From: Basidiobolus meristosporus CBS 931.73
Taxonomy: Eukaryota; Fungi; Basidiobolomycota
Assembly (NCBI GenBank): GCA_002104905.1
Contig: MCFE01000027.1
Coordinates: 124,001-188,000 of the forward strand
Length of the DNA: 64,000 bases
Direction of reading: 5' to 3'
Shown one piece after another: positions 1 through 23,172 of the stretch (position 1 is its first letter; each line of letters opens with the position of its first letter). The notes beneath the pieces are model-generated. The model saw only the letters and a program-made list of their open reading frames with translations, was not told where the DNA came from and did no database searches. The position numbers and the translations under genes are program-made.

Positions 1-1017
1 TTAGACCTTTGGCTAGAATGTTCAAGTTACATTAGGTTTAATCAAATCAATTAGCTTTGTGCTTAACCTATCAGTATTTCAGTGTTTTCTATCAAGTCCA
101 TAATATTAGTTAGCAGATGAATCAGCAAATCCTTATCAAACCAAAACTGATATACTAAGTAAGACCTAATTGAGTGAAGATGATGCACTCAGAGAAGTCA
201 GCAGTAACAATTTACATTAGAACATACAATTAGTCAGCAATTGATATGGCAAAATGTGTTTAAGGAGCTGTTGGAGCCTGAATAAAAATCAGCTCAGGGT
301 CAGTGAATACAATACTAGCTAGACTTTCCATTCCTCTTCAACACTTTTATCAAGACTTGTAACAACTTTCTGTAATGCTCCAGAAGCATTTCTCTCCATA
401 GCTGTCTTATTGTATTAGTATAATGGACATCAGAAAGTGTCTTGACCATTTCCTATTCTGCAGTTTTATCCTATGATAGACTTTCCTCAACATATATCTG
501 CTAATATACTGAATCTCCTGAGGTATACATCAGTAGGTTCTAATCTCACTATGAAATGATTGAATAACACGCCATAGAGCTTCTACTGCTTGCCAAGCAC
601 AACATTTCTTGGCTTCTATCAGCTGCTATACATCCTAGTCCCTGACAATCCTCCTTTGTATAAGCTAAGCCTCCCATACATTTCTCCCCTATGAAAAAGT
701 ATTGAAATGATCCCATCAAAAGGTCTTCACATATCTAAAGTCCCGTGACTAAGAGGCACCAATACTGTCAGGACACAGTCTAGAGACCATTGAACAGTAA
801 TTGCACCCTGGATTTCACAAAAAACTTGGTCAAAATGTTTCATCATAACAATGTATAAGTAGCTTTTCATTAGTTCCCTGCCAATTTGCTCACTCTTTGA
901 TCCCAGACACTCAATTGCCTCCTACATTTGTGTGCATTGATTGACTATTGCCTCTTTTTCAAATTTCTTACTACTTGACTCAACTGTTGCTCTTACTTTT
1001 CATGCATACAAATTGAT

Positions 1018-2876
1018 TTATTTCCGTAGAAACTTCAGTTGTACATCAATTGCCAATTGTATTGGCCTATGCAAGTCCCTATACACTACACTAACATTAA
1101 GACCAACCCCGCACTCAAAAAGTAACTCCATTAAGATTCCCCACTCAATAAGTGTTTCTGCTGTAACACTCTGGTTCCACAACTCTGGCAGGAATGCAAC
1201 AGCTTTGTGCCACAGTTCATTCACTGGTTCCCACACATCCTGGTCTTCAGCTGGTGCTGCAAGGTCTAGCACCGCATCTGCCAGTCTTTGCAGTAAATCC
1301 TTGCAATATTCCAGTGTGTTTTCTTGAGCACTGCTCTTGAAGAAGTGCTGCAACCACTTAGTGTGCTAATTAATGCTCCAAAGTTCCACTGAAGGTATTG
1401 TGATAGTTGTTCAAGCTTGTAATATTGTAGCCTTATCTGTCAGTGGGATCTCCACTCTGTCAGCAATGGACAATGTGGAGGCTGTGGTAGACAAGTTGTC
1501 TTTTCAGCAAACTCATCTACCTTGCAAGAGTGTGGCTCAACTGGCTGCGCTTCCAACTCTTGTGAGAACAGCTGTTTTCTTGTTGGTAATTCTTCTTGGC
1601 TATGATGGGATTCAGTCTGTTCTGGGCTTGCATAGTCAACTGGCAACACCTGCAGTTTTTTTTGCTTGCCTCCCTGTCTCAGGCTTGGGAAGACACTTTT
1701 CCCTATACCTTTTCCTTTATCACCACTAAGTCTTTCACTGCTACTTTGTCTGAGTGCTTCTTGTACAGAACTATGTTCTCTCCTGGATAAATTCTGCTCT
1801 GGCGCATCTGTTTTGGCCTGCCTGTTTCTTGCTGCCACTCTTCTGGCAACCTGACATTTCTTTTCCCCTTGTTTTGGGCTCTCAAATATAGTTGTGACAG
1901 GCGCCTGTAAAAGCAGCTGGTTTTTATCACTGCCAGGTCCTTCACTGCTACTTTGACTGGGTGCTTCTTGAGTGGTGCTGCACTTTTTCCTTGATAAATG
2001 TTGTGCAGGTTCATCCATGTCTGCTTGCTTGTCCCTACTTGTCACTCTTCCAGCTACCTGACATCTCTTTGATGCTTTTGTGGAGCTTTCAGCCCTGCAT
2101 GTAACAGGCTCTTGAGGAAGCCACCGGTTTTTAGCCATGGCACCCTTGTTCTTCTGCCTTTGATAGTTTCTGCTACTCTTAAGATACTTTCTTGGCACAC
2201 CAATGCTGGCCAAAAATCCATTTGCCTGTTTGAATCCAGGATAATGCTCATGGACCAAGTGAAGTGCATTTTGCTTGGCCTTGAGTTTCCTGATAATCCC
2301 ATGGTATGCCAGCCTTAAGGTGATGGCATGCTAGACTTTTGACGGACTCTTGTATATTAGCCTACTCTTCATTATTGCACTCAACAGCTTCATGGATCTT
2401 CAATGACTTTTAATTTTTAGGCACTGATATAAACACCATGTTGTCTCCCTCCCATGCTGTGATAAGTTTTTCTGTGTGCTTTATCTTTGGGCACTGTTGT
2501 TGTGTGCTAAAGACTGTACAGTATTCCTCTGCTGTGACATTGGGAAATGGCTCAATTCTTGGCTGTGACCTTGAGCTACTTGAGTCCTTCTTTGCAGCAA
2601 AGATACTACTTTCTCTACCTTAAATAATGATTGCTCTACACATATTATCCACTCATCCTGTTACTGGACAATTTCCTGATTTCTCTGGGCCATTGCATCT
2701 ATCCTATCAGTCACTGCCCATAATTGCTTCATTAATGCTTTGGTATGAGCTGACAACATACTTGCTAATATTGGTGGTGGTGATGTTATCACAGACACTT
2801 GCTGGTCTTCATCTGAGGGTACTGTGTTTGCTATATTCTCATCTGCCTGAGCATAACAGTCAGCTTGTGGCTCCAC
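1018..2876 (-). pseudogene. Transposon ORF2 (unknown accessory protein), copy 1, fragmented
   Basis: ORF pieces 2661-2876, 1440-2258 and 1018-1353 are collinear homologs of the + strand pieces at 9541-11426 (e.g. FKQANGFLASIGVPRKYLKSSRNYQRQK; QHFFKSSAQENTLEYCKDLLQRL). Confidence 0.8.
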
Positions 2877-3308
2877 AGAAGTTCTTCATTGCGTACTTGA
2901 CTGAGAGCCTGAGGAGTCCGCATTATTACCTTCAATGGGCACACTATCCACAGGGCCTTTTTTGGATGTAGCCCTGCTTGTTGCACTGAATGTCAAAGTA
3001 AGCTGTTGTCCAACTGTTCCTCTGTTGCCATCAGTGTTGAGGTTTGGTTGGGATCCAGACAATTTTGCTTTAATTTATGGTGGCATAAATATGGAAGCAA
3101 GTCAAACCAAAGGGGAAATAGTGTTACATATACTTGTATATGTGGTGCTGCAACTTTATTTATCATGCTTACTATGGCAGGTTGTCATTGAATCTTACAT
3201 TGATGTAGATGCAAAGTCTCAAATACAAGACTGTCTTAAGTTCACATGAATATTGACCAAAAGGTGATATAATAGCATTACATTGTTGAAGGTCAAACTG
3301 TTTGCCCC

Positions 3309-5330
3309 ATGGACAAGGCTACTTTGACTCAACACCATAAGAGAAGTGAAAAAAGACCATGTGGCTATTGTGGCAAGCCTCTCAGCCAAGAAGCACACAG
3401 ACAGTATAGGTGGTATTACAAGGAGCATTGCCTGTGTTTTGCCACCCAAGTGATATTTGACCATTAATTGGTACTATTGTACCAACATTATCTTGCTGGC
3501 CAGTTGATACTTCAGCATTGGCACCTGGCCATCTTTGTCACCTTAAGCAAACTGAGTCAGGTGATCTTGTGATGCCTTTATGCTCACCTCAGCCTTCTCA
3601 ATATGGCATGCAGAGTGATAGCTCTCACAAAGAAGGTTCACTGATGGATTTGGAGCATATCTCCTGTAACAACAGCTCCACATATGAGCCCAGTCAAATC
3701 CCTATATGCAATGAGACAACACTGGTTGAAACAAATGTCAAGGATACTTTATGGAGCCAAGCAAGCCCAGTAGTCCATCTACTGGTGAAGGATGTAATGT
3801 TGTGGCTAGAGAAGTGATGTGTTTCTACTAATATCAGTAATGGGGGCTTTGAGGATTTATTACTACCTCTTGCAAAAATCATACCGGGATGCAACTTACC
3901 ATGTACATGGTACAAGTGGACAGCTGTCATGCAGCTCGCAACATATTATCCAGAGACTGTCCAGATTCCAGTATGTGTTAACAGTTGCATGGCATTCACA
4001 TCCAAAAATGCTACCATTGCAACATGTCCAAATTGTCAGAAATCCACCACCATTGAGGGAAAACATTGTTCACACTCCGGATATATTCTGGTCATACCCT
4101 GTCTGAGAAACCTGATGCAGTCCAACAAATATTGCAAAGCTGTAGAGTACCTCTCTCAGTATCAATCAGGTGCAAACATATCTGACATATTCAATGGCAA
4201 ACATTACAAACAGCTAAGAAGCTGAGGCACAATCTTAATTTTGTTGATACACACACTAAACCAACAGGTTCAGTAATCTTTATTTATATTTATCTGATCA
4301 AGTGGAATTAGTAAATGTCAAGGGACTGGACTAATTGAAATCTGTTGGGGTGTTGATAGGTGCATAAGATAAGTAAAAAAAATTGCATCATTAATCAGTT
4401 GATGTCTTGGCAATTACTAAGTGGTTGGGTAGATCTCAGAAGACTAATTCTTTGGAAAGGCTTGGCAGATCAATAGAGGACATAATGAACACTTGAGAAT
4501 TGATCAGATGTGACAGCTAAAAATAGATTCCAAGAAGTGAAAAAATAAATCATAACTGGGATTAGTTATGTTTGGATTAGGGAAAATCAGTTAGGGTACT
4601 AGATTTCTAATGGAGTGAAATTGACTAAGTTTTAAATGTTGATGCACAACAGCCAGAATATGGAATCAATTGAAAACTGGAGATACTTAAGATACAGGGT
4701 ATCTGTTGGAGCAAAAGCTTTGCACTGAGAGCAATGCATTTGCTTTTCAACAATATCCCTATACTGATGACCAAGTTGTACATGGGGCATTTCAAGTTAA
4801 ATAAGCCCTTTGAGATACTGGAGAAATTTGAAAGAATTGGCAAGATATTACAGAGTATCTGCTACCCTAGGTACTTCTCACAGGCTCCAATTAATATTCA
4901 TTAGCATATGCAACAATAAAATGCAATGACTGGATGAACTGGATATGTATTTTTCCAAGTAGTGTTCTATAGCCATTCCTACTAAGAGTACATTGGAAGC
5001 ATTGGGAGTCATATGTGGGCATTGTAGGAATATTCATCCAGAAGCGGATCACCAATGCCAACTTGACGCATCTACAGCTGTTGTGTGAGGAGTTTGTGAC
5101 AGGATTTAAGCGGCTATACTACAAACATAAAGCTGAATGTGTAGATCTCTGCTGCTACAGTATTCATTCTTGACTCCATCTTGCATGGTGTGTGCAGAAT
5201 ATTGGGCCTTGCTTCACCTGTTGAGAGTTTCCTATAAAGCGTATGTGTGGAGAGATAGGAGGACAAGTCAAGTTGCAGGTACTACCATATCCTAATCTCA
5301 TCAAGAATATTACCTTCAAGTCCATCATGG
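3309..5330 (+). pseudogene. CMC/EnSpm (Transposase_21/tnp2-like) transposase, copy 1, disrupted
   Basis: ATG at 3309 (MDKATLTQHHKRSEKRPCGYCGKP), then CVNSCMAF..CPNC and SDIFNGKHY. Interrupted at 4225-4650 by unrelated sequence, then resumes with the C-terminal region (EYGIN..SFPL.AMHLLF..GPCFT.EFP). Contains stops and frameshifts. Confidence 0.85.
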
Positions 5331-5931
5331 ATGTGATGCTGTCATGGATGTAATGAGTTGGCACATGGAGGTCAGCCAGGAAGAGTTGGAAAATACTGAG
5401 GACAAATGTGCACATGGAGACACCTATGCCTATGACATTAAGAGCTAAGCAGCCCCAATGTGTGTGTAATTAGTTAAGTAATGCAGAGTTGGGTTGGGTG
5501 CAACAAGCAGCTAGTTTTTATCAGGAAAACTCTACCAAGCTATGCCAAATTTGTCATGGTCACAAGCCAATTTCTACACCATTTAATATGGAATTCACAC
5601 AAACAAAATCCAGAGTGCACCTATAAGGGGGACTAGAGTCCAGCAGGGAGAAGGGATATATTGGCTCAGTACCAAGAAGCTTGTTGCGGATATTCAGGAG
5701 GTATTCATGGCCAAAGTGGCAACAACCAAGCATATGTTTGCAAGATGTATATGTTACCAGCAGTACAAGGTATATGGCACTTTGTAAGTATCATACTAAA
5801 AAGTCATAAAGTTGAGGTGATAGAAGTATGTCAATTGTGGCAGGTGTGTGCATTTGTAGAGGTAGGTAAGCAGGAGGCCATAGTTTTTCTGATTCAAACT
5901 ATATGTGGAATACCTAAGGTAGAAAAAGGAA

Positions 5932-6135
5932 TACCACTTGATAAATTGGTACAGTAACATTATACAGAGCCAGCTGTAGGCCATCATACTGCCAATATAG
6001 TGCCATCAGAGTCTTGCTATGAGGCCATTGCATTACCACTTGGTAAATTGGTACAGTAACATTATACAGAACCAGCGGTAGGCCGTCATACTGTCAGTAT
6101 AATGCCATCAGAGTCTTGCTCTGAGGCCATCAAAA
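5932..6135. repeat. ~102-bp tandem duplication in the 3' subterminal region of copy 1
   Basis: TACCACTTG(A/G)TAAATTGGTACAGTAACATTATACAGA...GAGGCCAT starts at 5932 and again at 6034. Copy 2 has only one unit. Confidence 0.9.
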
Positions 6136-7349
6136 TACCATCAAGTTTCTTGTTATATAAGGCAATTGGATGTCCTGGCTGACTGGATTTACTTAAAATA
6201 GTTATAGAGTGCTGAAAGACTGCAACAATACCATGCAAACATTGTTATAGCACCAATTAAATCTTGTCAAGTTTACCCTATGAAAAATAATTTGGTCCCA
6301 TGGATGGTTCCATTCTGGATCAGCCATCAAGATCCCATTTAGAGACCATCATAATAACAGCAGCTTGGAATTAGTGACCCTCCTAACAATCTTATAACAA
6401 GATCATGATGGTGCTTTGCTAATTTTACAGCCAAATAAAGGGTAATATTTTATTGATGCTGTAACAATATTTGCATGGTATTATTGCGGTCTTTCAGCAC
6501 TCTATAACTATTTTAAGTAAATCCAGTCAGCCAGGACATCCAATTGCCTTATATGACAAGAAACATGATGGTATTTTGATGGCCTCCAAGCAAGACTCTG
6601 ACGGCATTATACTGACAGTATGACGGCCTACCACTGGTTCTGTATAATGTTACTGTACCAATTTACCAAGTGGTATTTCCTTTTTCTACCTCCCCTTGTG
6701 CACTTCATATATTCCACTGTAGAATCACCTTTCTTTACTTGCTTACCCACCACTACCTTGGGTATTCCACATATAGTTCAAATCAAAAAAAACTATGGCC
6801 TCCTGCTTACTAACCTCTACAAATGTGCACACCAGCTGCAATTGACATACTTCTATCACCTCAACTTTACGGCTTTTTAGTGTGATACTTGCAAAGTGCC
6901 ATATACCTTGTACTGCTGGTAACATATACATCTTGCAAACATATGCTTGGTTGTTGCCACTTTGGCCATGAATACCTCCTGAATATCCGCAAAGAGCTTC
7001 TTGGTACTGAGCCAATATATCCCTTCTCCCTGCTGGATTCTAGTTCCCCTTGTAGGTGCGCTCTGGATTTTGTTTGTGTGAGTTCCATATTCAATGGTGT
7101 AGAAGTTGGCTTGTGACCATGACAAATTTGGCATAGCTTGGTAGAGTTTTCCTGATAAAAACTAGCTGCTTGTTGCACCCAACCCAACTCTGCATTACTT
7201 AACTAATTACACACACATTGGGGCTGCTTAGCTCTTAATGTCATAGGCATAGGTGTCTCCATGTGCACATTTGTCCTCAGTATTTTCCAACTCTTCCTGG
7301 CTGACCTCCATGTGCCAACTCATTACATCCATGACAGCATCACATCCAT

Positions 7350-9247
7350 GATGGACTTGAAGATAATATTCTTGATGAGAATGGGATTTGTTAGTACCTG
7401 CAACTTAACTCATCTTCCTATCTCCCCACACATCCGCTCCATAGGAAACTCCCAAAAGGTGAAGCAAGGCCCAATATTCTCCACAAACCATGCAAGATGG
7501 AGCAGTGACTGGATACAGTAGCAGCAGAGATCTACATGTTCAGCCTTATGTTTGTAGTATAGCCACTCAAATCCTGTTACAATCTCCTCACACAACAGCT
7601 GTAGATGCGTCAAGTTGGCATTGGTGATCTGCTTCTGGATAAATATTCCTACAATGTCCACATATGACACCCAATGCTTCCAATGTGCTCTTGGTAGGAA
7701 TGGCTATAGAACACCACTTGAATAAATGCATATCCAGTTCATCCAGTCATTGCATTTTTATTGTTGCATATGCGTATGAATACTAACTGGAGCCTGTGAG
7801 AAGTACCTTGGGTAGCAGATACTCTGAAATATCTTGCCAATTCTTTCAAATTTCTTCAGTATCTCAAAGGGCTTATTTAACTTGAAATGCCCCATGTACA
7901 ACTTGGTCATCGGTATAGGGATATAGTTGAAAAGCAAATGCATTGCTCTCAGTGGAAAGCTTTTGCTCCAACAGATACCCTGTATCTTAAGTATCTCCAG
8001 TTTTCAATTGATTCCATATTCTGGCCAATGGCTTATAGCTTGTCAACTTCAATGCAGATTACAATATGTGCTTTTACATGATGGCCATTAACCATAATTG
8101 CACTGGAAAGCTTGCAAAATTCTTCCAGCAATGGATACAGGTAGCTATCCAGGTCGGACAGTGACTTAGGACCAGATACCGGTGCAACTACCATTGGATT
8201 ATTGCTCTGATACCGTATGATGGGCAGCAGATTCAGATTGATAAGAATCAGTGGTGAGCAGGATTTGCTGGTAGAGTACTTGTTTAATGAGAATCCATCT
8301 AGTGCTAAAACAAAGGCATGGTCATACATACCTTCAAAGTAGCCCTTGCTTCTTAGCGGTTTGTAGTGTTTGCCATTGAATATATCAGATATGTTTGTGC
8401 CTGATTGATACTGAGTGCGGTACTGTATAGCTTTGCAATATTTGTTGGACTGCATCAGCTTCCTCAGACAGGGTATGACCGGAATATATCCGGAGTGTGA
8501 ACAATGTTCTCCCTCAATGGTGGTAGATTCCTGACTAGTTGGACACATTGCAATGATAGCATTTTTGGATGTGAATGCCATGCAGCTGTTAACACATGCT
8601 GGAATCTGGACAGTCTCTGGATCATATGTTGCCAGCCGCATGACAGCTGTCCACTTGTACCATGTACATGGTAATTTGCATCCTGGTATGATTTTGGCAA
8701 GAGGTAGTAATAAATCCTCAAAGCACCCATTACTAATATTAGTGGATATGCACCACTTCTCTAGCCACAACATTACATCATTCACCAGTAGATGGTTTAC
8801 TGGGCTCACTTGGCTCCATAAAGTATCCTTGGCATTTGTTTCAACAGGTGTTGTCTCATTGCATATAGGGATTTGACTGGGCTCATACATGGTACTGCTG
8901 CTAGGGGAGATAGGCTCAAAATCCATCAGTGAACCTTCTTTGTCAGGGCTATCACTCTGTGTGCCATATTCAGAAGGCTGAGGTGAGCCTAAAGGTGTCA
9001 CAAACTCACCTGACTCAGTTTGCGCAAGGTGACAAAGATGGCCAGGTACCAATATAGAAGTATTAACTGACTGGCGAGATAATGTTGGTAAAGTAGTGAC
9101 CAATGAATTGTCAAATATGACTTGGGTTGCCAAACACTGGCTGTGCTCCTTATAATACTTCATATACTGTCTGCATGCTTCATTGCTGAGAGGCTTGCCA
9201 CAACAGCTACATGGTCTTTTTCCTCTTCTCTTACAGTGTTGAGTCAA
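7350..9247 (-). pseudogene. CMC/EnSpm (Transposase_21 + DUF4218-like) transposase, copy 2
   Basis: 404-aa ORF 8033-9247 has CVNSCMAF, SDIFNGKHY, LALDGF (first catalytic Asp region), LINLNLLPIIRY and SGPKSLSDLDSYLYPLLEE. Downstream frames give MHLLFNYIP, KCNDWMNW and LLHLAWFVENIGPCFTFWEFPMERMCGEI. The GDxPA/GH/CxxC core expected in this family is missing. Confidence 0.9.
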
Positions 9248-9540
9248 ATTAGTCTTGTCCTTGGGGCAAACAGTTTGACCTTCAACAATGTAATGCTATT
9301 ATATCACTTTTTGGTCAATACTCATGTGAACTTAAGACAGTCTTGTACTTGACACATTGCACATACATGAATGTAAGATTCAATGATGACCTGCCATAGT
9401 AAGCACTATAAATAAAGTTGTAGCACCATGTATACAAGTATATGTAACACTATCTCCCCTTTAGTTTGACTCACTTCCATTTATATGCCACCAAAAAAAT
9501 AAAGAAAAGTCATCTAGTTCTCAACTAAACCCCACAGCTG

Positions 9541-11426
9541 ATGGCAGCAGGTAGGGTTGAGAGAACCTTTGTGGAGCCACAAGCTGACCATTATGCTCAG
9601 GCAGATGAGAATGTAGCAAATGCAGTACCCTCAGCTGAAGATCAGCAAGTGGCCATGATATCATCACCACCACCCATATTAGCAAGTATGTTGTCAGCTT
9701 GTACCAAAGCATTAATGAAGCAATGAGGTGCAGTGGCTAATAGTATAGATGCAATGGCCCAGAGAAGTCAGGAAATAGGCCAGAAATAGGATGAGCAGAT
9801 AATATGTTTAGAGTAATCAATATCCAGGTAGAGATAGCAGTATCTTTGCAGCAAAGAAGGAACTCAAGTAGCTCAATGTCACAGCCAAGAGTTGAGCCAT
9901 TTCCCATTGTAACAGCAGAAAACACCGTACAGTCTTTGGAGCACAACAATGGTTCCCAAAGATAAAGCCCACAAAAAAACCTATTACAGCATGGGAGGGA
10001 GACAATATGGTGTTTATACTAAAGTCAAAAAAATCAAAAGACATTGAAGATCTGTGAAGCCATTGAGTGCAATAATGAAGAGTGGGCTAATATACAAGAG
10101 GCTGTCAGAAGCCTGGCATGCCATCACCTTAAGGCCAGCATGCCATGGGACCATCAGGAACTCAAGGGCAAGCAGAATGCACTAGACTTGTTCCATGAGC
10201 ATTATCTTAGATTCAAGCAGGCAAATGGATTTTGGGCCAGCATTGGTATGCTAAGAAAGTATCTTAAGAATAGCAGAAACAATCAAAGGCAGAAGAACAA
10301 GGGTGCCATGGCTAAAAGCCAGTGGCTCCGTCAAGAGCCCAGTACAAGCAGGGCTGAAAGCTCCAGACAAGTGTCAAAGAGATATCAGGCAGCTGGAAGA
10401 GTGCCAATTAGGGACAAGCAGGCTGACACAGATGCACCAGCACAACATTTATCCAGGAAAAGTGTAGTACAACTCATGAAGCACCCAGTCAAAGTAGCAG
10501 CAAAGCACCTGGCAGTGATAAAAACCAGCCGCTTTTACAGGAGCCTGTCACAACTATGTTTGAGAGCTCAAAACAAGCTGAAAAGAAACATCAGGTTACC
10601 AGAAGAGTGCCAGCAAGGGACAAGCAGGCCAAAACAAATGTGTCAGAGCAGAATTTATCCAGGAGAGAACATAGTTCTGTACAAGAAGCATGCAACAAAG
10701 TGGCAGTGAAAGACCTGGCAGTGATAAAGAAAAAGATAAAGGGAAAAATGTCTACCCAAGCCTGAGACAGGGAGGCATGCAAAGAAACTGAAGTTCTTGC
10801 CAATTAATGCTGCAAGCCAGGAACAGACTGAATCCCATCATAGCCAAGAAGAATTAGCAACAAGAAAACAGCTGTTCTTACAAGAGTTGGAAGTGCAGCC
10901 AGTTCAGCTACACTCCAGCAAAGTAGATGAGTTTGCTGAAAAAGGCAATTTGTCTGGCACAGCATCCACAGCCTCCATTGTTGACAGCGTGGAGATCCCA
11001 CTGACAGACAAGGCTGCAACATCAAGAGCTCAAAAGACTATCACAATGCCTTCAGTGGAGTTTTGGAACATTAATTGGCACACTAAGAGGTTGCAGCACT
11101 TCTTCAAGAGCAGTGCTCAAGATAACACACTGGAAAATTGCAAGGATTTATTGCAAAGACTGGAAGATGCGGAGCTAGACCTTGCAGTGCTGGCTGAAGA
11201 CCAAGATGTGTGGGAACCAGTGAATGAACAGTGGCATAAAGCCCTTGGGTTCCCGCCAAAGTTGTGGAGCCAGAGCAATATAGCAGAAATACTTATTGAG
11301 TGGTGAATTTTAATGGAATTACTTGTTGAGTGCAGGGTTGGGCTTAATGTTAGTGTAGAGTATAGGGACTTGTATAGGTCAATACAATTGGCAATTGAGG
11401 TACAACTAAAGTTTCAACAGAAATAA
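9541..11426 (+). pseudogene. Transposon ORF2 (unknown accessory protein), copy 2, fragmented
   Basis: Pieces 9541-9726, 10044-10709 and 10797-11306 continue to a stop at 11426. Homologous to 1018-2876. Start codon uncertain. Confidence 0.8.
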
Positions 11427-11929
11427 ATCAATTTGTATGCATGAAAAGTCAGAGAAACAGTTGAGTCAGGAAGTAAGGAGTGTGAACAAGAGGTAATAGC
11501 CAAGCAGTTTGCAGGAATGTAGGAGGCAATAGAGTGTCCAGGATCAGAAAGTGAGCAAATTGGCAGGGAACCAATCAAAAGCCACTTATAAATCATTGTG
11601 ATGAAAAATCTTGACTAAGTTTTTTGTGAAATCTGGGGTGCAATTGTTTTTCAAAGGTCTCTGGACGGTGTCTTCATGAGATCAGTACCTCTTAGTCATG
11701 GAACTTTCACTTTGTGACAGCCTTCTGACAGGATCATCTCAATAATTTTTCATAGGGTTTATCCCTATATTTGGTTGTAAAATTAGCAAAACACTGTCAT
11801 GATCCCATCAAAAGATTGTTAGGAGGGTCACTAATTCCAAGCTGCTGGTATTATGATGGTCTCTAAATGCAATCCTGATGGCTGATCTGGATTGGATCCA
11901 CCTGCAGGACCAAATTATTTCTCATAGGG

Positions 11930-13339
11930 GAATATTGCCTTTGAGTCTGTGATGGATGTGATGAATTGGCACATGCAGGACAGCCAGAAATAGTTGGAAA
12001 ATACTGAGGACTGATGTGCACATGGAGACACCTATGCCTATGACATTAAGGGCTAAGCAGCCCCAATGTGTGTGTAATCAGTTTAGTAATGCAGAGTTGG
12101 GTTGGGTGCAACAGGCAACTTGTTTTTTTTTGCAAAGCTCTGCACAAGTATGCCGCATCTCTCTTGGCAACAAGCCAGTTTCAACACTATTCAATACAGA
12201 ATTCACACAAACAAGAGCCAGGGTGCACCTATAAGGTGGGCTAGAATCCAGCAGGGAGAAGGGTTCCATTGGTTAAATACCAAAAAGTTCTTTGTAGATA
12301 TTCAGGAGGTGTTCATGGCAGAAGTGGTGGCAACCCAGTATATGTTTGCAAGATGTATATGTTATAAGCAATACAAGGTATGTGACAACTTTCCAAGTAT
12401 CACACTAAAAAGCTGTCAAGTTGAGGTGATAGATTTATGTCAGTTGCAGCAAGTGTGTGCATTTGTAGAGGTTAATAAGCAGGAGGTCATAATATTTTTT
12501 GATCTAAACTACCTATGGAGTACCTAAGGTAAGAGAGGATAAGCAAATAAAGAGGGGTGATTCTACAATGGAATATATGAATTGTGTAAGGGGAGGTATC
12601 AAAAGAACTGCCATTTGGTAACTTGGTACAGTAGTATTATACAGAACTAGCTGTAGACCAGCATACTGCTGTGATAATGCCATTAGAGCCCTATGAAAAA
12701 TCTCAAACTTGGAATTCATCTGATTTTTAGCTGGCATTCTGCTTGTATTCTGATGGTATTTTGCTGGTATTCAGCCGGTGTTTTGTGTTCAGAATTTCAA
12801 ATGCAATTTTTGGTGGAAGTAATGGGCAGCTAATTACCTAATTTGGCAGGGATGCTAGTTTGCTTAGTCTCCTTGTGGAGAACTGTATGCTGGCCTGCCC
12901 ATCAGCTCAGAAAAGAGATACTGAGAGTTGTCAATTATGAGAAACTTGGAATTCAGCTGCTACTATGATGGTATTTTGCTGGCCTTTTCTCGATTTTTAT
13001 TAGGGTGAGCCTTGCAATGAGTCTGTCAAAACTCCATCTAGTACTTTGCCATATAAGGCAAATGGACGTACTGGCCAGTTAGATCCACTCAAGTAGTTGC
13101 AGAGTGCACAAAGACCACAACAATGCCATGCCACCACTGACATATCACCATACAAGCACTGTAATGTTTTTAGCTTTATTTTGCTGTAAAATTAGCCCAA
13201 ACTCTGTTGTGATCCAGTCATAAGATCATGTAGATGGTCATGGATTCCAAGCTGCTGGTATTATAGTGGCCTCCTGATGGGATCTTGATGGCTGATCCAT
13301 ATTGGATCCACCCATGGGACCAAATTATTTTGCATAGGG
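11930..13339 (+). mobile_element. CMC-like transposon copy 3: 3' fragment only, carrying a MITE
   Basis: 11930 onward aligns to copy 1 from about 5306 (GAATATT.CCTT..AGTC..GATGGATGTGATG). Ends with the 3' TIR TTTTGCATAGGG at 13339. Confidence 0.85.
12689..13005. mobile_element. 317-bp MITE with CCCTA termini
   Basis: Left end CCCTATGAAAAATC, right end reverse complement CCCTAATAAAAATC (12/14). Flanks AGAG / TGAG (3/4 match). Removing it and one flank restores the host sequence CCATTAGAG-CCTTGC, collinear with copy 1. Confidence 0.85.
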
Positions 13340-13842: not shown

Positions 13843-14193
13843 TGTGGTAAGAGTCTTGGAGATATTGGAAGTGATTGGGAGGACAAGTGGATTATGTGGG
13901 TTTCACTTAATGATTTACTGAATGAAAAGGTAGTATTTGTACTTTTACATGGTCTTGGCATTACAAACATGTAGAATTGGTTAAGGAAGGTCCCAAGAAC
14001 ATGTGTGCAAAGCTGGGGGCTGTTTGGACAACTTTGAGAATTTTCATGTTCTAGGTACCTGGTATTTTGGTGAAAGTATTCTATGTAAATCCCCACAAGG
14101 AATTTTGGTTAGTATTCTCTAGAATTTGAAGGTAATGATCTAAGTGAGTAAGATAGATCAATATTTAGGTGGAATTCCAAATTTTTTACAACA
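13843..14193 (-). repeat. Solo LTR (copia family), 351 bp
   Basis: TGTGG...CAACA, homologous to the intact LTRs. Perfect 5-bp TSD TTAGA (13838-13842, 14194-14198). Confidence 0.93.
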
Positions 14194-15679
14194 TTAGATA
14201 GGCTGGATTTAGTCTCCTCTAATGTTTCAAGGCTATTGATGGCTATAATGAGATCATCTACATATATAGCTAGTAGAACTGGATTTGCTCTATGTGGCTT
14301 ATAGTATATACTATAGTCAGCATTATTCCTTTGCAAACTCAAAGATTTCAAATAAGAATCTATCTTGCAACTCCATGCTCTTGGTGTTGTTTGAGTCTAT
14401 ATAGAGATTTTTTAAGCTTGCTGGCCATATGGGAGTTATCTTGGTCAGCAAATACACCAGGCTGGCACATATACATGTCCTCATCAAGCTTTGCATTTAA
14501 AAATGCAGCCTTTAGATCCAAATGAGGTTTAAAAAACTGTTTTTTTTGCTGCAATAACCAATATTAATCTAATGGAATTAAACTTGGCTAACAGTGCAAA
14601 GGTCTCAATATAGTCAAGCCCTTTTGTTTGTGAGTATCCTTTGGTCACAAGTCTTGCTTTGTATCTTTCAACTCTACCATCAGCCTTGTATTTGACTTAA
14701 AGGCCCTTCTGCATCCAATTGATTTTCAGTTAATGGGTAAATTGACCAAGTCCCAAGTTTAATTTTCCATCAGGGCCTGATACTCCTCAGTCATTGCAGA
14801 TCTCCAAAGCTTTGTCTGAGGGCTATTCAGGGCCACTTTTACAGTCTGTGGCTCATCAATATGGACTTAATAGGCATAGGCTGAGTGTGTACCCTGATTG
14901 ATATGGTAATTTGACCTATTTTTTGACCAGTTGGATCTCCTGGTCTATGATACTAGAATGACCACTTCTGGGTTATTACTTGGCACTGATTCAGACAAGA
15001 CTACAGTTGCAGAGTTCTATGGAGTGAAAAATATTTCATTGTTTTGCTCTGATTCAACCCTGATTATTGGTGGACCTGAAATCCAACTTTTGTCTGCATC
15101 TAATGTCAGTTGTTGTGAAATTTGGATTTTCATCAATCAACACAGCCTTGATGCTTCACTCTTATAGCAGTAGCCCAAAAATATGCATTTTACACTTTTT
15201 GGCTCAAATTATGACTGATTTCCAGGCAGTTTCTTGCATATGCTGTGCACCCAAGTATTCTTAGATGTTCTGCACTTGGTCTGTATCTACACCATGTCTC
15301 AATGGAGTAGAATTGCATCATGCTCTGTTATAACCCCCATATTAAGGGTATAGAGATGTTGCAACTGATTTTGCCCAAAAAACATAGGATAATTTTTGAT
15401 CATGCATCATGGATCTGGCTATATTAATTATTGATCTGTTTGCACATTCTGCCACTCCGCTTTGCTGTAGGGAGTATGGTAAAGTAGTCACTTGCTTTAT
15501 CCCATGAATTTTGCAGAAGTGGATGAAGGGTATTGGGTATGTTCTCCTCCATTGTGAGAGTATATTTTCTTGCTATTTTCACCAGCTTCTTTCTCCACCT
15601 TAGCTTTAAACTTGCTGATCTTGAACAAAGCTTCTTCCTTTCTTTCCATGAAGTACACCCACATGTATTTTGTACAATC

Positions 15680-15970
15680 TGTTGTAAGAGTCTAGGAGAT
15701 ATTGGAAGTGATTTGGAGAACAAGTAGATTATGTGGTTTTCACTTGATGATTTATTGAATGTAAAACTAGTATTTATACTTTGACCTGGTCTTGGCATTA
15801 CAAACACATAGAATAGGCTAAGGAAGGTCCCAAGAGCATGTGTGCAAAGTTTGGGGCTGTTTGGATAACTTTAAGAATTTTCATGTTCTAGGTACCTGGT
15901 ATTTTGGTGAGAATATTCTAAGTGACTAATTTAGGTGAATATTTAGATGGAAATACAAATTTTTACAACA
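15680..15970 (-). repeat. Solo LTR (copia family) with ~60-bp internal deletion
   Basis: TGTTG...CAACA with perfect TSD CAATC (15675-15679, 15971-15975). The deletion joins two CTAAGT microhomologies of the full LTR. Confidence 0.93.
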
Positions 15971-16548
15971 CAATCATCAATAAATGTGGTTAAATACTTC
16001 ATCCTACCTAAGGGTAAGTTTTGCATAGGTCAGTAAAGATCTCAGTGAGTTAAATCTAATTTTTTCTTAGTTTTGATTAGCACAGAGCTCTTGAGTGGTT
16101 GTCTGGCTTGTTTCCCATATATGCAGGATTCACAGTGCTCCAAAATAGCTGGGGCATCAGTTTTTACTCCAGAAGTTAGCTGAGATTTGACCATTTTGTA
16201 CAAATGATCAATGTGAATGTGTCCAAATCTCCTGTGCCAAAGCATTGGTGTTTCTTCACTTAAGTTACTTATATTGGCAGCCAGATATGATGGAATATAA
16301 GTCAGTTTGTATAGATTTGGATCTCTGATACCCAAGGCAATATGGGTGCCATTCTGATCAGTGATCCTGCATCCAGAACTGTCAGAGCTGAAACTGAGTC
16401 CTTCTACAGTGGCCTTGCTCACAGATAGTAGGTCCTTGGCTATTTCTGGTACACAGAGTACTTATTTCAAGGTAAGTATATAGATTCCTTTACTGCTTCT
16501 AAGGTTGACTTGGAAAGTGCCTTCTCCCACTGCATCAAGTGTTCTATT

Positions 16549-16898
16549 TGTTGTAAGAGTCTTGGAGATATTGGAAGTGATTGGGAGAACAAGTAGATTA
16601 TGTGGTTTTCACTTAATGATTTATTGAATGTAAAAGTGGTATTTATACTTTTACCTGGTCTTGGCATTACAAACACGTAGAATAGGTTAAGGAAGGTCCC
16701 AAGAACATGTGTGCAAAGTTTGGGGCTGTTTGGACAACTTTGAGAATTTTCATGTTCTGGGTACCTGGTATTTTGGTGAAAATATTCTAAGTAAATCCCG
16801 ACAAGGAATTTGGTCAGTATTTTCTAGGATTTGAAGGTAATGATCTAAGTGACTAAGTTAGGTGAATATTTAGGTGGAAATACAAATTTTTTACAACA
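16549..16898 (-). repeat. 3' LTR of the intact copia
   Basis: 350 bp; identical to 20886-21235 except at offsets 251 and 335. Confidence 0.98.
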
Positions 16899-16909
16899 CT
16901 CCCACTCAG
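16899..16909 (-). other. Polypurine tract of the intact copia
   Basis: Minus strand reads stop codon TAG, then CTGAGTGGGAG, then the TGTTG of the 3' LTR. Confidence 0.85.
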
Positions 16910-19900
16910 CTAAATGTTCACACTGACTAGTCCTAATTTTGACCTAAGATATTCAAACTTGTCTCTAGCTAATGGTTTGGTAAATATGTCTGCAATCATT
17001 TCATCTGTAGGACAGTAAACTAATCTTACTAAGTTACTCTCTATAGCTTCACGTATGAAATGATGTCTAATATCTATGTGCTTGGTTCTAGCATGAAAAG
17101 TTGGATTTCTACCTAATTGTATACATCCTTGATTATCTTGAAATAAAGTAATAGGCGTTTTTTGACATAGGCCTAAATCTGTAAACAGCTTTCTTAACCA
17201 CATTGCTTCTTTTGTAGCCTCACAGGCTGCCATATATTCTGCCTCTGTAGTAGAAAGTGCTACGGTTGGTTGCTTTCTTGAATTCCATGAAATTGCTCCT
17301 TTACAGTAAAGAAAGGTGTATCCTGTGGTGGATCTTCTGTCTTCTAAATTTCGTCCCCAATCAGCATCAGAGTATCCCACAAGATCCTGTTCTGAATCCT
17401 TATAAGTGTATCTTAAGCAGATATCAGCAGTTCCTTTTAGGTATCTAAAAATCCGCTTAACTGCTGCAATATGATCAGATCCATAATTCTGATTATGTTG
17501 GCTGACAACTCCCACTGAATATGAGATATCTGGACGTGTTCCAAGCATGATATACATCAGACTGCCAACCATAGATTGATAAGGAAAGTCAGGGCTTTCA
17601 GATGGCACCAAGCTCTCTTGATTTGGTTGAGTTTTGACCAAGTTAAGGTTTGTCTCCATTGGGGTAGCTGCCGGTTTACAGTCTTCCATTTTGTACTTCT
17701 TTAGTATGTCTTGAATATACTTGGATTGGCTTAGGGTAATAGTCTGGGTACTTCTGTCTATGGAGAACTTAATCCCTAAGTAGTAACTGAGTTCTCCTAG
17801 ATCGGACATCTTGAACTCCTTAGATAGGCTGGATTTAGTCTCTTCCAATGTTTCTAGGTTATTGGTGGCTATAATAAGATCATCCACATATAGAGCTAAT
17901 AGAACTGGATTTGCTCTATCTGGCTTATAGTATATACTATAGTCAGCATTACTCCTTTTGAAACTCAAAGATTCCAAATAAGAATCTATCTTGCAATTCC
18001 AGGCTCTCGGTGATTGTTTGAGACCATATAGTGACTTTTTAAGCTTGCAGACCAAATGGGGGTTATCTTGGTCAACAAACCCATCAGGCTGGTCCATATA
18101 CATGTCCTCATCAAGTTCTCCATTCAAAAATGCAGTTTTTACATCCATTTGATGAATAAAAAACTTATATTTGGCTGCAATAGCCAATATTAATCTGATG
18201 GAATTAAACTTGGCTACCGGTGCAAAGGTCTCAGTATAGTCAAGTCCTTTTGTTTGAGAGTATCCTTTGGCTACAAGTCTTGCTTTGTATCTTTCAATTG
18301 TACCATCAGCCTTGTACTTTGTCTTGAAGACCCATCTGCATCCAATTGATTTTCGGTTGATTGGTAATTTGACTAAGTCCCAAGTTTGATTTTCCATCAG
18401 GGCCTGATATTCCTCAGTCATTGCAGATCTCCAAAACTTTGTCTGAGGGCTATTTAGGGCCTCTTTTACAGTCTGGGGTTCATCAATATGGACTGAATAG
18501 GCATAGGCTAAGTTTGTACCCTCATTAATATAGTAATTTGGGCTATTTCTTGTCCGATTTGATCTCCGGGCATTTGATACTGGAATGATCACTTCTGGGA
18601 TATTCCTGGGCACTGATTCTGGCTGAACCACGGTTGTAGAGTCCTCTGGAGTGAAAAAATTTTCATTGTTTTGCTCTGATTCAATCCTGACAATTGGTGG
18701 ACTTGAGATCAAATTTTTGTCATCATCTGATGTCATTTTTTGTGAAAATTTTGAATTTTCATCAAACAACACATCCCTGGACTTGATCAGCTTCTTTGCT
18801 TCGGTATTGTAGAGTCTGTATGCCTTACTCTCATTGCAGTAGCCCAAAAATATGCATTTTACACTTTTTGGCTCAAATTTTGACTGATTTCCGGCCAGTT
18901 TTTTGGCATATGCTGTACACCCAAATATTCTTAGATGTTCTGCACTTGGTCTGTGTCCATACCATGCTTCAAATGGAGTAGAATCACGAAGTATTCTGTT
19001 ATAACTCCTATTTTTAAGATATACAGCAGTGGCAACTGATTCTGCCCAAAAATCATAGGATAATTTTTGAGCATGGATCATAGATCTTGCCATATCAATT
19101 ATTGATCTGTTAGCTCGTTCTGCTACTCCATTTTGCTGTGGGGAGTATGGTACAGTAGTCTCTTGCTTTATCCCATGAATTTTGCAGAAGTGGATGAAGA
19201 GTTTTGAGGTATATTCTCCACCATTGTCAGAGCATATTTTCTTGATTTTTTCACCAGTTTCTCTCTCCACCATGGCTTTAAACTCCCTGAGCTTAGACAG
19301 AGCTTCTTCCTTTCTCTCCATGAAGTAGACCCATGTGTATCTTGTATAATCATCAATAAAAGTGATTAAATACTTCATCCCGCCTAAGGATAAATTTTGC
19401 ATAGGTCCACACAGATCTGAGTGAATTAGATCTAATTTTTTCTTAGTTTTGATTAACCCAGAGCTCTTGAACGGTTGTCTGGCTTGTTTCCCATATATGC
19501 AGGCTTCACAGTGCTCCAAATTAGCTGGGGGATCAATTTTCACACCAGAAATTAGCTGATCTTTGATCATTTTACGCAAATAATCAAAATTGATGTGTCC
19601 AAATCTCCTGTGCCAAAGCATTGGTGTTTCTTCATTTAAGTTACTTATATTGGCTTCCAGATATGATGGAATATAAGTCAACTTGTATAGGTTCTGATCT
19701 CTGATGCCCGAAGCAATATGAGCACCATTTTGATCAGTGATCCTGCATCCAGAATTGTCAAAACTGAAACTGAGTCCTTCTGCTGTGGCCTTGCTTACAG
19801 AGAGTAGGTTCTTGGCTATTTCTGGTACATAGAGTACTTCTTTAAAGGTCAGTGTATGGCTTCCTTCACTGCTTCTAAGGTTTACTTGGATAGTTCCTTC

Positions 19901-21013
19901 TCCCACTGCATCAAGTGTTCTATCGTCACCCATGAAAACCTTCTTAATTGGGATTTCTTGATATTGGGTAAAAAGTTCTTTTTGGTGTGTAAAGTGTTGA
20001 GAAGCTCCAGAGTCAATATACCACGTCTGAGAATCCTTGTTTGTGGTCATATTTAGTGCAGATATGAATAGTCTATCTTCAGTTGTTGCAGCATTTCCAT
20101 ATTCAGGCTTCTTTTGCTGATAATCTCTCTTTTTGAAACACTGGTCTGATGTGTGTCCTTTCCTTTTGCAGTAGTTGCAAAATAGGTTGCTGTTGCCTTT
20201 GTAGGGTCTTGGGTACCTCCTTTGTTGGTTATCATTGCTTATTAAAGCATTTTCTTCTTCCTTCTTATTGGCGCTTGATTTTCTTAATTCTTCATCCAGG
20301 AGCCTTCCATATACGTAATTTAAGGTCAAATCTTCAGTTCTGGACTCTAGGGCTGATACAAGGCCCTGAAACTCGTCTGTCAGGCTATTCAGGATGGTAA
20401 CTATCACATCCTCATCAGTAGTTGGTACGCCCACAGATTCCATCTCATCTACCAGCAGGGTAATTCTGTTAATTAGATTTTTCATTTCTTCTCCTGGCAG
20501 CATCTTTGTAGTAAAGAATTTTCTTCTCAGATACATTTTCTTGGCAGCTGAACATGACTGGTAGGTGTCTTCTAATGCTTTCCAGGCATTTTTTGCCGTT
20601 TTTGCTCTTGAGCATTGAATTAGCAATTTGTCCTTGACATTAAGGCAAATGCAGTTAAAGGCACTTTGTTCTTTCTTCTGGTACTTTAAGGCTTCCTCTC
20701 CCACGTTTTTAGGAGGGCATTCTTCTCCCATGACAATATCCCAAAGGCCTCTTTCTTGCAGCAGCATCTTCATCTTCACCTTCCACACTTGGTAGTTAGA
20801 TCCATCCAACTTTTCAGCAGAGGGAAAAATTCCAGTAATAGCAGTAGTAGACATTGCAGAGAGTGACAGCTCGGGGCTCATAACCTGTTGTAAGAGTCTT
20901 GGAGATATTGGAAGTGATTGGGAGAACAAGTAGATTATGTGGTTTTCACTTAATGATTTATTGAATGTAAAAGTGGTATTTATACTTTTACCTGGTCTTG
21001 GCATTACAAACAC
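16910..21013 (-). CDS. Copia gag-pol polyprotein (gag, Zn knuckle, protease, integrase, RT, RNase H)
   Basis: 1,367-codon ORF with LDGSNYQVWKVKM, CNYCKRKGHTSDQC, WYIDSGASQH, WHRRFGH..CEAC, HSDLCGP / SDNGGEY / QNGVAERAN, KARLVAKGY, MDVKTAFLNG, YVDDLII, YSDADWG and ADIFTKPL in copia domain order. The true start may be the ATG in the PBS or MSTTA. Confidence 0.97.
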   Translation of the reverse strand: MFVMPRPGKSINTTFTFNKSLSENHIIYLFSQSLPISPRLLQQVMSPELSLSAMSTTAITGIFPSAEKLDGSNYQVWKVKMKMLLQERGLWDIVMGEECPPKNVGEEALKYQKKEQSAFNCICLNVKDKLLIQCSRAKTAKNAWKALEDTYQSCSAAKKMYLRRKFFTTKMLPGEEMKNLINRITLLVDEMESVGVPTTDEDVIVTILNSLTDEFQGLVSALESRTEDLTLNYVYGRLLDEELRKSSANKKEEENALISNDNQQRRYPRPYKGNSNLFCNYCKRKGHTSDQCFKKRDYQQKKPEYGNAATTEDRLFISALNMTTNKDSQTWYIDSGASQHFTHQKELFTQYQEIPIKKVFMGDDRTLDAVGEGTIQVNLRSSEGSHTLTFKEVLYVPEIAKNLLSVSKATAEGLSFSFDNSGCRITDQNGAHIASGIRDQNLYKLTYIPSYLEANISNLNEETPMLWHRRFGHINFDYLRKMIKDQLISGVKIDPPANLEHCEACIYGKQARQPFKSSGLIKTKKKLDLIHSDLCGPMQNLSLGGMKYLITFIDDYTRYTWVYFMERKEEALSKLREFKAMVERETGEKIKKICSDNGGEYTSKLFIHFCKIHGIKQETTVPYSPQQNGVAERANRSIIDMARSMIHAQKLSYDFWAESVATAVYLKNRSYNRILRDSTPFEAWYGHRPSAEHLRIFGCTAYAKKLAGNQSKFEPKSVKCIFLGYCNESKAYRLYNTEAKKLIKSRDVLFDENSKFSQKMTSDDDKNLISSPPIVRIESEQNNENFFTPEDSTTVVQPESVPRNIPEVIIPVSNARRSNRTRNSPNYYINEGTNLAYAYSVHIDEPQTVKEALNSPQTKFWRSAMTEEYQALMENQTWDLVKLPINRKSIGCRWVFKTKYKADGTIERYKARLVAKGYSQTKGLDYTETFAPVAKFNSIRLILAIAAKYKFFIHQMDVKTAFLNGELDEDMYMDQPDGFVDQDNPHLVCKLKKSLYGLKQSPRAWNCKIDSYLESLSFKRSNADYSIYYKPDRANPVLLALYVDDLIIATNNLETLEETKSSLSKEFKMSDLGELSYYLGIKFSIDRSTQTITLSQSKYIQDILKKYKMEDCKPAATPMETNLNLVKTQPNQESLVPSESPDFPYQSMVGSLMYIMLGTRPDISYSVGVVSQHNQNYGSDHIAAVKRIFRYLKGTADICLRYTYKDSEQDLVGYSDADWGRNLEDRRSTTGYTFLYCKGAISWNSRKQPTVALSTTEAEYMAACEATKEAMWLRKLFTDLGLCQKTPITLFQDNQGCIQLGRNPTFHARTKHIDIRHHFIREAIESNLVRLVYCPTDEMIADIFTKPLARDKFEYLRSKLGLVSVNI
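20873..20885 (-). other. Primer-binding site, half-tRNAiMet type (GGTTATGAGCCCC)
   Basis: Abuts the 5' LTR. Complementary to the anticodon arm of fungal initiator tRNA-Met (GGGCTCATAACC), as in Ty5 and Drosophila copia. Confidence 0.9.
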
Positions 21014-21235
21014 GTAGAATAGGTTAAGGAAGGTCCCAAGAACATGTGTGCAAAGTTTGGGGCTGTTTGGACAACTTTGAGAATTTTCATGTTCTGGGTA
21101 CCTGGTATTTTGGTGAAAATATTCTAAGTAAATCCCAACAAGGAATTTGGTCAGTATTTTCTAGGATTTGAAGGTAATGATCTAAGTGACTAAGTTAGGT
21201 GAATATTTAGGTGGAAATACGAATTTTTTACAACA
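20886..21235 (-). repeat. 5' LTR of the intact copia
   Basis: 350 bp, TGTTG...CAACA, followed by the TSD CTATT. Confidence 0.98.
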
Positions 21236-21540
21236 CTATTGTCACCTATGAAAACCTTCTTGATTGGAATTTCTTGATAATGGGTAAAAAGTTCTTTTTA
21301 GTGTGTAAAGTGTTGAGATGCTCCAGAGACAAGTTACCACATCTGAGAATCCTTGTTTGTGGTCATATTTAGTGCAGATATGAAAGTTCTATCATCTGTT
21401 ATTGCAGCATTTCCATATACAGGCTTCTTTTGTTGATTATCTCTCTTCTTGAAGCACCAGTCTAATGTGTGCCCTTTCATTTTGCAGTAATTGCAAAACA
21501 TGCTGCTATTGCCTTTAAGGGGTCTTGAGTGCCTCCTTTG

Positions 21541-23172
21541 TGTTGTAAGAATTTGTTTTTCCACCTAAATATTCACCTAACTTAGTCACTTAGATCATAC
21601 TCTTGTATCCTAGAGAATACTGACCAAATTCCTTGTCAGGATTTACTTAGAATATTTTCACCAAAATATCAGGTACCCAGAACATGAAAATTCTCAAGGT
21701 TATTCAAACAGCCGCAAACCTTGCACACATGTTCTTGGGACCTTCCTTAACCTATTATATGTGTTTGTAATGCCAAGACTATGTAAGTGTATAAATACTA
21801 CATTTTCATTCAATATATCATTAAGTGAAAACCACATAATCTACTTGTTCTCCCAATCACTACTAATATCTCCAAGACTCTTACAACAGGTTATGAGCCC
21901 CAAGTTGTCACTCTCTGCAATGTCTAATACTGCTATCACTGGAGCTTTTCCCTCTGCTGAAAAGTTGGATGGATCTAACTATCAAGTGTGGAGGGTGAAG
22001 ATGAAGATGATGCTGCAAGAAAGAGGCCTTTGGGATATTGTCATGGGAGAAGAATGCCCTCCTAAAAACGTGGGAGAGGAAGCCTTAGAGTACCAGAAGA
22101 AAGAACAAAGTGCCTTTAACCGCATTTGCCCTAATGTTAAGGACAAATTGCTAATTCAATACCCAAGAGCAAAAACGGCAAAGAATGCCTGGAAGGCATT
22201 AGAAGACACCTACCAGTCATGTTCAGCAGCTAATAAAATGTATCTGAGACAAAAACTCTTTACTACAAAGATGCCGCCAGAAGAAGAAATGAAAAATCTA
22301 ATTAACAGAATTACCCTGCTGGTAGATGAAATGGAATCTGTGGGCGTACCAACTACTGATGATGGTGTAATAGTTACCATCCTGAAAGCCTTACAGACAA
22401 GTTTCAGGGCCTTGTATCTGCCCTAGAGTCCAGAACTGAAGAATTGACCTTAAATTACATATATGGAAGGCTCCTGGATGAAGAATTAAGAAAATCAAGC
22501 ACCAATAAGAAGAAAGAAGAAAATGCTTTAATAAGCAATGATAACCAACAAAGAAGGTACCCAAGACCTTACAAAGGCAACAGCAACCTGTTTTGTAACT
22601 ACTGCAAAAGGAAAGGACGCACATCAGACCAGTGCTTCAAAAAGAAAGATGGTCAGCAGAAAAAGCCTGAATATGGAAATGCTGCAACAACTGAAGATAG
22701 ACTATTCATATCTGCACTAAATATGACCACAAACAAGGATTCTCAGACATGGTATATTGACTCTGGACCATCTCAACACTTTACGTACCAAAAAGAGCTT
22801 TTTACCCAATATCAAGAAATTCCAATAAGATGGTTTTCATGGGTGACAATAGAACACTTGATGCAGTGGGAGAAGGAACTATCCAAGTCAACCTAAGAAG
22901 CAGTGAAGGAAGCCATACACTGACTTTCAAAGAAGTACTTTATGTACCAGAAATAGCCAAGAACCTACTATCTGTAAGCAAGGCCACTGCAGAAGGAGTC
23001 AGTTTCAGCTTTGACAATTCTGGATGCAAGATCACTGATCAAAATGGTGCCCATATTGCTTTGGATATCAGAGATCAGAATCTATACAAGTTGACTTATA
23101 TTCCATCATATCTGGAAGCCAATATAAGTAACTTAAATGAAGAAACACCAATGCTTTGGCACAGGAGATTTG
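21541..23172 (+). mobile_element. Oppositely oriented, 3'-truncated copy of the same copia (5' LTR 21541-21888, PBS 21889-21901, frameshifted gag-protease)
   Basis: LTR is followed by GGTTATGAGCCCC. ORFs 21761-22426, 22444-22896 and 22830-23180 are near-identical to the intact gag/PR. Breaks at WHRRF. Confidence 0.93.

Follow-up and report, generated by a model that had tools for sequence, protein, structure and literature searches.

Does the long inverted structure at the left of this stretch of DNA belong to a known group of transposons, or does it represent a distinct fungal lineage? The window analyzed comprises 64,000 nucleotides of the genome of Basidiobolus meristosporus CBS 931.73 (contig MCFE01000027.1, positions 124,001 to 188,000 of the forward strand), and all positions below are counted from its first nucleotide. 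A preliminary description, made from the sequence alone, had proposed an EnSpm-like element of the CMC group at 6272 to 11761, in which an EnSpm-type transposase, CCCTA ends, a 4-bp target-site duplication, and a divergent second gene were combined. We consider it likely that this structure consists of decayed, nested copies of a single CACTA/EnSpm (tnp2, Transposase_21) family of CMC-group DNA transposons of B. meristosporus, which moved by cut-and-paste and produced a 4-bp duplication.

Ends and nested arrangement of the copies

Copy B is an internally deleted, nonautonomous element of 5,482 bp (positions 6276 to 11757, plus strand). Its left terminal inverted repeat (6276 to 6292, plus strand) reads CCCTATGAAAAATAATT and its right one (11741 to 11757, minus strand) reads CCCTATGAAAAATTATT; they match at 16 of 17 bases. 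On both sides, the element is flanked by an identical TTTA (6272 to 6275 on the left and 11758 to 11761 on the right). Thus, the previously proposed 5,482-bp unit with 17-bp inverted repeats and a perfect TTTA duplication was found at this position. It is complete with respect to its ends but not its genes, both of which are broken, with approximately 90 residues of the transposase core deleted.

The ends of the family can be written as inverted CCCTATGAAAAAT(A/T)ATT. When the terminal 13-mer was searched with up to two mismatches, nine sites were detected in the window (2.7 expected), a number reached by none of 100 shuffled sequences. Seven of the nine are true termini, at 687(+), 6276(+), 11757(-), 11929(-), 12689(+), 13005(-), and 13339(-), and all seven start with CCCTA. 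The base immediately outside these termini is not constant (a, a, c, c, g, a, and t), and therefore the end of the element was set at CCC/GGG.

Other candidates for elements or end structures were discarded. A CCCTA...TAGGG pair at 48104 to 48499 has neither an extended repeat nor a duplication and was taken as a chance occurrence. The first 170 bp of B were considered as a separate miniature inverted-repeat transposable element (MITE), with CCCTAT as the inner edge in copy A (see below); because this site is CCCTTT in B and AGCTTT in fragment C, the segment was assigned to the terminal region only. No convincing subterminal repeat arrays were found in the element, CCATCA/TGATGG being merely 3-fold enriched near the ends. 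In metagenome contigs, the 17-base terminus gave at least 119 single matches, approximately the number expected by chance for 16 fixed bases. One such contig (L069, 5105 to 5314) matches 12 bases of the terminus at two sites 210 bp apart and in opposite orientation; this region is GC-rich and has no duplication, and the pair was also judged to be due to chance.

Self-comparison of the window revealed that 687 to 6265 is the reverse complement of 6444 to 11757. The left arm is the main part of copy A, an older, inverted copy (687 to 6275, minus strand; 86 to 94% identical to B), which has its right end, CCCTATGAAAAAG, at 687. The last 168 bp of A are displaced: they follow directly after B at 11762 to 11929 (minus strand; 86% identical to B 6276 to 6445), carry the left terminus CCCTATGAGAAAT when read on the minus strand, and finish in CATAGGG at 11929. 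Since the left 168 bp of A are found beyond B, the insertion of B took place within A, 168 bp from its left end and with B in inverted orientation, and TTTA was duplicated. The nesting of B inside an older copy also shows that the ends and the duplication of copy B are real.

The 11-kb inverted structure could instead be read as a fold-back (palindromic) duplication of a single element, the TTTA pair then being a coincidence in AT-rich DNA. Indeed, the arms are nearly palindromic around a spacer of 178 bases, and their central parts are more alike (94%) than their distal parts (86%). We regard this origin as extremely improbable, and for practical purposes ruled out, because the A-B homology stops exactly at the outer termini 687 and 11757 and does not continue into the flanking DNA. 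Furthermore, the position of the terminal 168 bp of A beyond B can be explained only by an insertion that split A. The arms also differ by 6 to 14% and by large indels, namely, a 429-bp filler and a 97-bp tandem duplication (5932 to 6130), both in A, and the gradient of identity is compatible with gene conversion that acted later between inverted arms lying close together.

Looking at this gradient along the insertion of B into A, we found 94% identity near the center of the palindrome (4652 to 6265 versus 6444 to 8025) and 86 to 88% farther out (687 to 4222 versus 8348 to 11757), while the displaced 168 bp of A are at 86%. This looks like gene conversion between the inverted arms or like copies of mixed ancestry. 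The filler in A (4223 to 4651) is AT-rich and unrelated, stands in place of the first-aspartate region of the transposase, and has no match elsewhere in the window.

A third copy, fragment C (11930 to 13339, minus strand), comprises a truncated left end that corresponds to B 6276 to 7371. It adjoins A exactly at the left terminus of A (11929/11930), without a target duplication, and the remainder of C was not found left of 687. The A/C junction, otherwise unexplained, is attributed to a later rearrangement or deletion.

A broken transposase gene and a divergent second gene

The N-terminal part of the transposase of copy B is encoded by an open reading frame (ORF) of 404 codons at 8033 to 9247 (minus strand). 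It matches the Pfam family Transposase_21 (E value of 1e-5; 25.3 bits), and no other Pfam family, Plavaka included, was detected in it even at E values up to 1. For protein searches, the transposase and the second gene, ORF2, were queried as separate pieces. A phmmer search with the transposase ORF against 1.84 billion representative sequences returned 631 tnp2-type relatives at E values up to 0.001, the best with an E value of 1e-28 and 36% identity. The relatives that were scanned carry Transposase_21, with E values down to 2e-27, and never the Plavaka domain. All named relatives that were looked up are fungal and are listed as "Transposase family tnp2" or hypothetical proteins; they come from Panaeolus, Rhizoctonia, Ceratobasidium, Mycena, Sporobolomyces, and Rhodosporidiobolus. 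These matches bear out the original assignment of the gene as a tnp2-type transposase. A word search with the 404-residue ORF gave no relative within a length band that excludes full-length relatives.

The remainder of the gene was located by tblastn with three relatives (P0005, P0013, and P0026; E values of 1e-11 to 5e-14), which aligned in two frames, first at 8749 to 8096 and then at 8021 to 7413. The second segment is the conserved C-terminal part (7413 to 8021, minus strand; EYGIN...MHLLF...FPMERMCGEIG). It contains in-frame stops, and its frame differs from that of the upstream part. Overall, the reading frame of the B transposase is interrupted by several stops and a frameshift.

The catalytic core of B was judged by alignment with ten full-length relatives. 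The region of the first aspartate is present (LALDGF), and the second aspartate is probably present, in EVDKL, compared to GD(I/M)PA in the relatives. In the relatives, GD(I/M)PA is followed by PCRxC, whereas B lacks approximately 90 residues following the second aspartate, the PCRxC C(2)C motif among them, and the sequence jumps from EVDKL near 8045 to EYGIN at 8021. This segment is deleted in A as well, and the right boundary of the gap is common to both copies (B 8025 corresponds to A 4652). At the H(3)H site, B has QSLLH and A has HS*LH, compared to IHxLLH in the relatives, and the FPMER motif is kept in B. The DGF, MH...N, and FPMER motifs align with those of basidiomycete relatives.

In collections that include the annotated CBS 931.73 proteome, no protein was more than 44% identical to the transposase piece. 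The transposase of this family seems to be absent from the CBS 931.73 annotation.

ORF2 lies on the plus strand at 9541 to 11306, in three pieces (9541 to 9726, 10044 to 10709, and 10797 to 11306), and is divergent from the transposase gene. Its ATG at 9541 is 293 bp from the end of the transposase ORF at 9247, in agreement with the head-to-head second ORF about 300 bp away that had been noted before. With it, the proposed combination of an EnSpm-type transposase, CCCTA ends, and divergent genes in one element is present in the sequence. ORF2 is broken in copy A, too. No Pfam family was detected in the ORF2 pieces at E values up to 0.01, Transposase_23 and Transposase_24 included, and a word search with a 221-residue piece found no relative within its length band. 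PAS-like leads for the C-terminal piece, obtained from the ESM Atlas, were rejected: recognition was below the threshold, and few features were shared. By analogy with TnpA of En/Spm, the ORF2 product would most likely be an accessory protein that binds the ends of the element.

With both genes broken, copy B is not functional and is unable to move alone. Substitutions between A and B are distributed evenly among the codon positions of both genes (32/32/34, 22/28/27, and 19/27/20), which shows that A and B have decayed neutrally since they parted. As a deletion derivative with both genes broken, B must have depended on intact copies elsewhere for its transposition. The shared deletion boundary (8025/4652) furthermore suggests that the common ancestor of A and B was probably an element in which the deletion was already present and which was mobilized in trans by such copies. 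From what is known of DDE transposons, the family would move by DDE cut-and-paste: the transposase would recognize the CCCTATGAAAAAT ends, cut the target with a 4-base stagger, and join the ends to it, and the duplication would then result from repair of the gaps.

Length of the target-site duplication

The length of the duplication was read from two insertion events, both in this window. One is the insertion of copy B; the other is that of a MITE of 317 bp (12689 to 13005, plus strand), which carries the same 13-bp termini and was inserted into the truncated fragment C, duplicating AGAG. The MITE is flanked by AGAG (12685 to 12688) and TGAG (13006 to 13009). These flanks match at three of four positions, as expected from the near-perfect 4-bp flank reported for it earlier.

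Paralogous sequences provided the state before each insertion. At the site that corresponds to the insertion of B, B itself reads ATTA followed by CCC and fragment C reads TTTA followed by GC. The single ATTA or TTTA indicates that one such tetramer was present in the target before B was inserted. The empty site of the MITE reads CAGAG followed by TCTTGC in both A and B. With the ends set at CCC/GGG, neither event has matching flanks when 2, 3, or 5 bases are compared, and flanks of 4 bases match completely for B (4/4) and at 3/4 positions for the MITE. Based on the base composition of the window (43.5% G+C), the probability of a chance match is approximately 0.004 for 4/4 and approximately 0.05 for at least 3/4.

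An alternative is that the duplication of the family is 3 bp long, as is usual for EnSpm, and that its right end has one extra T, so that CATAGGGT is followed by TTA in copy B and by GAG at the MITE. Both duplications would then be perfect (TTA/TTA and GAG/GAG), and the blastn overlap at the empty site of the MITE is indeed 3 bases (A 6111 to 6113). The empty site itself cannot separate the two lengths, both of which predict the same sequence before insertion. We nevertheless consider the extra T unlikely. A G, not a T, is located outside the right end of A (687), and no letter is constant outside the seven termini. Moreover, the extra base requires asymmetric ends, yet in all other respects the inversion of the 13 terminal bases is perfect. 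Finally, a substitution in an old duplication is simpler than an added base, and the right end of the MITE already has two mismatches. We conclude that the target duplication of the family is probably 4 bp. The earlier proposal of 4 bp therefore holds for both datable insertions of the window when the ends are placed at CCC/GGG, but as a rule for the family it is based on these two events.

Several observations weigh against a 4-bp EnSpm family as the source of the nest. The Pfam score of the copy B ORF is under the curated cutoff of 28.6 bits, and the C(2)C signature is not visible, its segment being deleted in A and B. ORF2 has no detectable relatives and is broken in both copies. Copy A is without any duplication (TCTC versus GAAT). 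Last, just two insertion events are readable, one of them with a mismatch in its duplication.

Position of the transposase among fungal tnp2 proteins

A quick maximum-likelihood tree was calculated from the N-terminal core (136 rows and 240 columns). The copy B transposase is on a long end branch (1.15, compared to a median of 0.46), part of this length reflecting the decay of a pseudogene. The clade to which it belongs comprises 58 rows and has a Shimodaira-Hasegawa-like approximate likelihood ratio test (SH-aLRT) support of 95. The members of this clade that were looked up are unnamed metagenome or Logan proteins, with the sole exception of one from Rhodosporidiobolus odoratus, and the named Agaricomycete proteins are outside it. 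The tree, whose rows do not include references for Mirage, Chapaev, Transib, or Plavaka, shows a distinct family inside the fungal tnp2 (Transposase_21) radiation rather than a position among the named CMC groups.

The preliminary description had spoken of a possible distinct fungal CMC lineage. Distinctness is seen in the 36% identity to the best relative and in the separate long branch, but the branch lies inside the ordinary fungal Transposase_21 radiation. In summary, this is a real and distinct family that belongs to a known superfamily; its CCC ends are unusual, and its duplication is probably 4 bp long.

Neighboring retrotransposons and host genes

To the right of the nest, an apparently intact Ty1/copia retrotransposon is located at 16549 to 21236. 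It contains one ORF of 1,367 codons (16910 to 21013, minus strand) with gag, protease-region, integrase, and reverse transcriptase domains. Its two 351-bp long terminal repeats (LTRs) are 99.4% identical, indicating that the element is young. Further copies of this LTR (TGTTGTAAGAG...TTACAACA), some of them solo, were found at 13843 to 14193, 15676 to 15973, 21540 to 21888, and 23172 to 23521. The one at approximately 15680 to 15971 is inside an older copia fragment and is flanked by CAATC, duplicated over 5 bp; its empty counterpart in a paralogous sequence is at 19348. The 351-bp repeats between 13843 and 23521 had been considered as a second MITE family before they were identified as copia LTRs.

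Ordinary host genes follow on the right of the transposon nest. They encode a cytochrome-b5-reductase-like oxidoreductase (24888 to 25694), a single-exon PPR protein (28178 to 30151, minus strand; 99% identical to a protein of B. meristosporus CBS 931.73), an Oxa1/60KD_IMP protein (31215 to 32051), a metacaspase (45993 to 46649), an RGS-domain protein (56664 to 58148), and the C terminus of SPT5 (62197 to 63159).

Significance and comparison with known transposons

In the literature, we found no published description of the ends, the duplication, or the gene layout of this family. A large CMC-EnSpm expansion in Basidiobolus has already been published (PMC5751038), and the family would put a name on elements behind it. 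With the CCCTATGAAAAAT termini, this family, which is scattered in large numbers over the B. meristosporus genome, can be annotated cleanly, MITEs included. Duplication length and terminal bases are characters used by taxonomists of transposable elements to split superfamilies, and a tnp2-type family that combines CCC ends with a 4-bp duplication would extend the range of characters known for EnSpm proper. More speculatively, early-diverging fungi may hold a separate, unnamed EnSpm-related lineage with CCC..GGG ends, a regular 4-bp duplication, and an obligatory, divergently transcribed partner gene of an orphan family. If so, this lineage would deserve to be named separately in the CMCT clade, like hAT7, ESTA, and PHISTA before it; at present, we consider this possible but doubtful. 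Beyond the classification and annotation of transposable elements, the reach of the finding is small, the copy being dead and its cut-and-paste biology ordinary.

By transposase homology (Transposase_21 and the phmmer relatives), the family belongs to the CMC/CMCT transposons. Its termini depart from those described for this group. CMC elements are characterized by CAC..GTG termini (PMC4079192, PMC6004678), and members of the CMCT clade by CA..TG termini "in most cases," with duplications of 2 to 5 bp (Kojima 2025, PMC12730594), whereas CCCTA was found at seven of seven termini here.

Could the family nevertheless belong to a named CMC lineage other than EnSpm, Plavaka or Chapaev, and have inherited its 4-bp duplication from there? 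Chapaev elements are indeed reported with 3- to 4-bp duplications (PMC4079192), so that the length is compatible, and Plavaka, a lineage of fungi, is a relative of EnSpm (PMC12730594). However, as judged from its published description, Chapaev was reported from animals and has invariable CAC..GTG termini (PMC4079192), from which the ends described here differ. Autonomous Plavaka elements are defined by pfam18759 (PMC8290104). PF18759 was matched neither by the ORF nor by any relative scanned at E values up to 1, while all of them match Transposase_21, and the named relatives looked up are all fungal tnp2 proteins. PlavakaA has TGT..ACA ends and a 2-bp duplication, and PlavakaB has CATCA..TGATG ends and a 2- to 3-bp duplication (PMC12730594). 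Thus, this family and the Plavaka elements of Agaricomycotina (A and B) are both fungal, EnSpm-related members of CMCT, but they differ in the defining domain, the termini, and the duplication. An origin in Plavaka or Chapaev is accordingly very unlikely, and an EnSpm-type family is the preferred assignment.

Like plant En/Spm, with TnpA and TnpD, the family combines a DDE transposase with a second protein-coding region. In En/Spm, both products are derived from one transcription unit and in one orientation. Here, in contrast, the two genes are arranged head to head, 293 bp apart. The accessory Pfam families of CMC elements in plants are Transposase_23 and Transposase_24 (PMC5751038); a second gene is present in copy B, but it matches neither of these TnpA-type families.

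The closest known systems are the fungal EnSpm/CACTA elements, such as the Pucciniomycotina families (PMC12730594) and CNIRT6 of Cryptococcus (bioRxiv 10.1101/2025.05.19.654958). They share with this family the Transposase_21 domain, short terminal inverted repeats, and a cut-and-paste structure, and the nearest named relative of the B transposase is from the Pucciniomycotina yeast Rhodosporidiobolus. Fungal EnSpm elements have CAC..GTG ends and a 3-bp duplication (PMC12730594), and a duplication of 2 to 3 bp is usual for EnSpm/CACTA. With the ends at CCC/GGG, the two events in the window do not show this length, and 3 bp survives only with the extra T. In comparison to the fungal EnSpm elements, the B. 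meristosporus family is therefore set apart by CCC..GGG instead of CAC..GTG ends, an apparent duplication of 4 instead of 3 bp in the two events, a transposase only 36% identical to its best relative, and a second, unrelated gene that is divergently transcribed.

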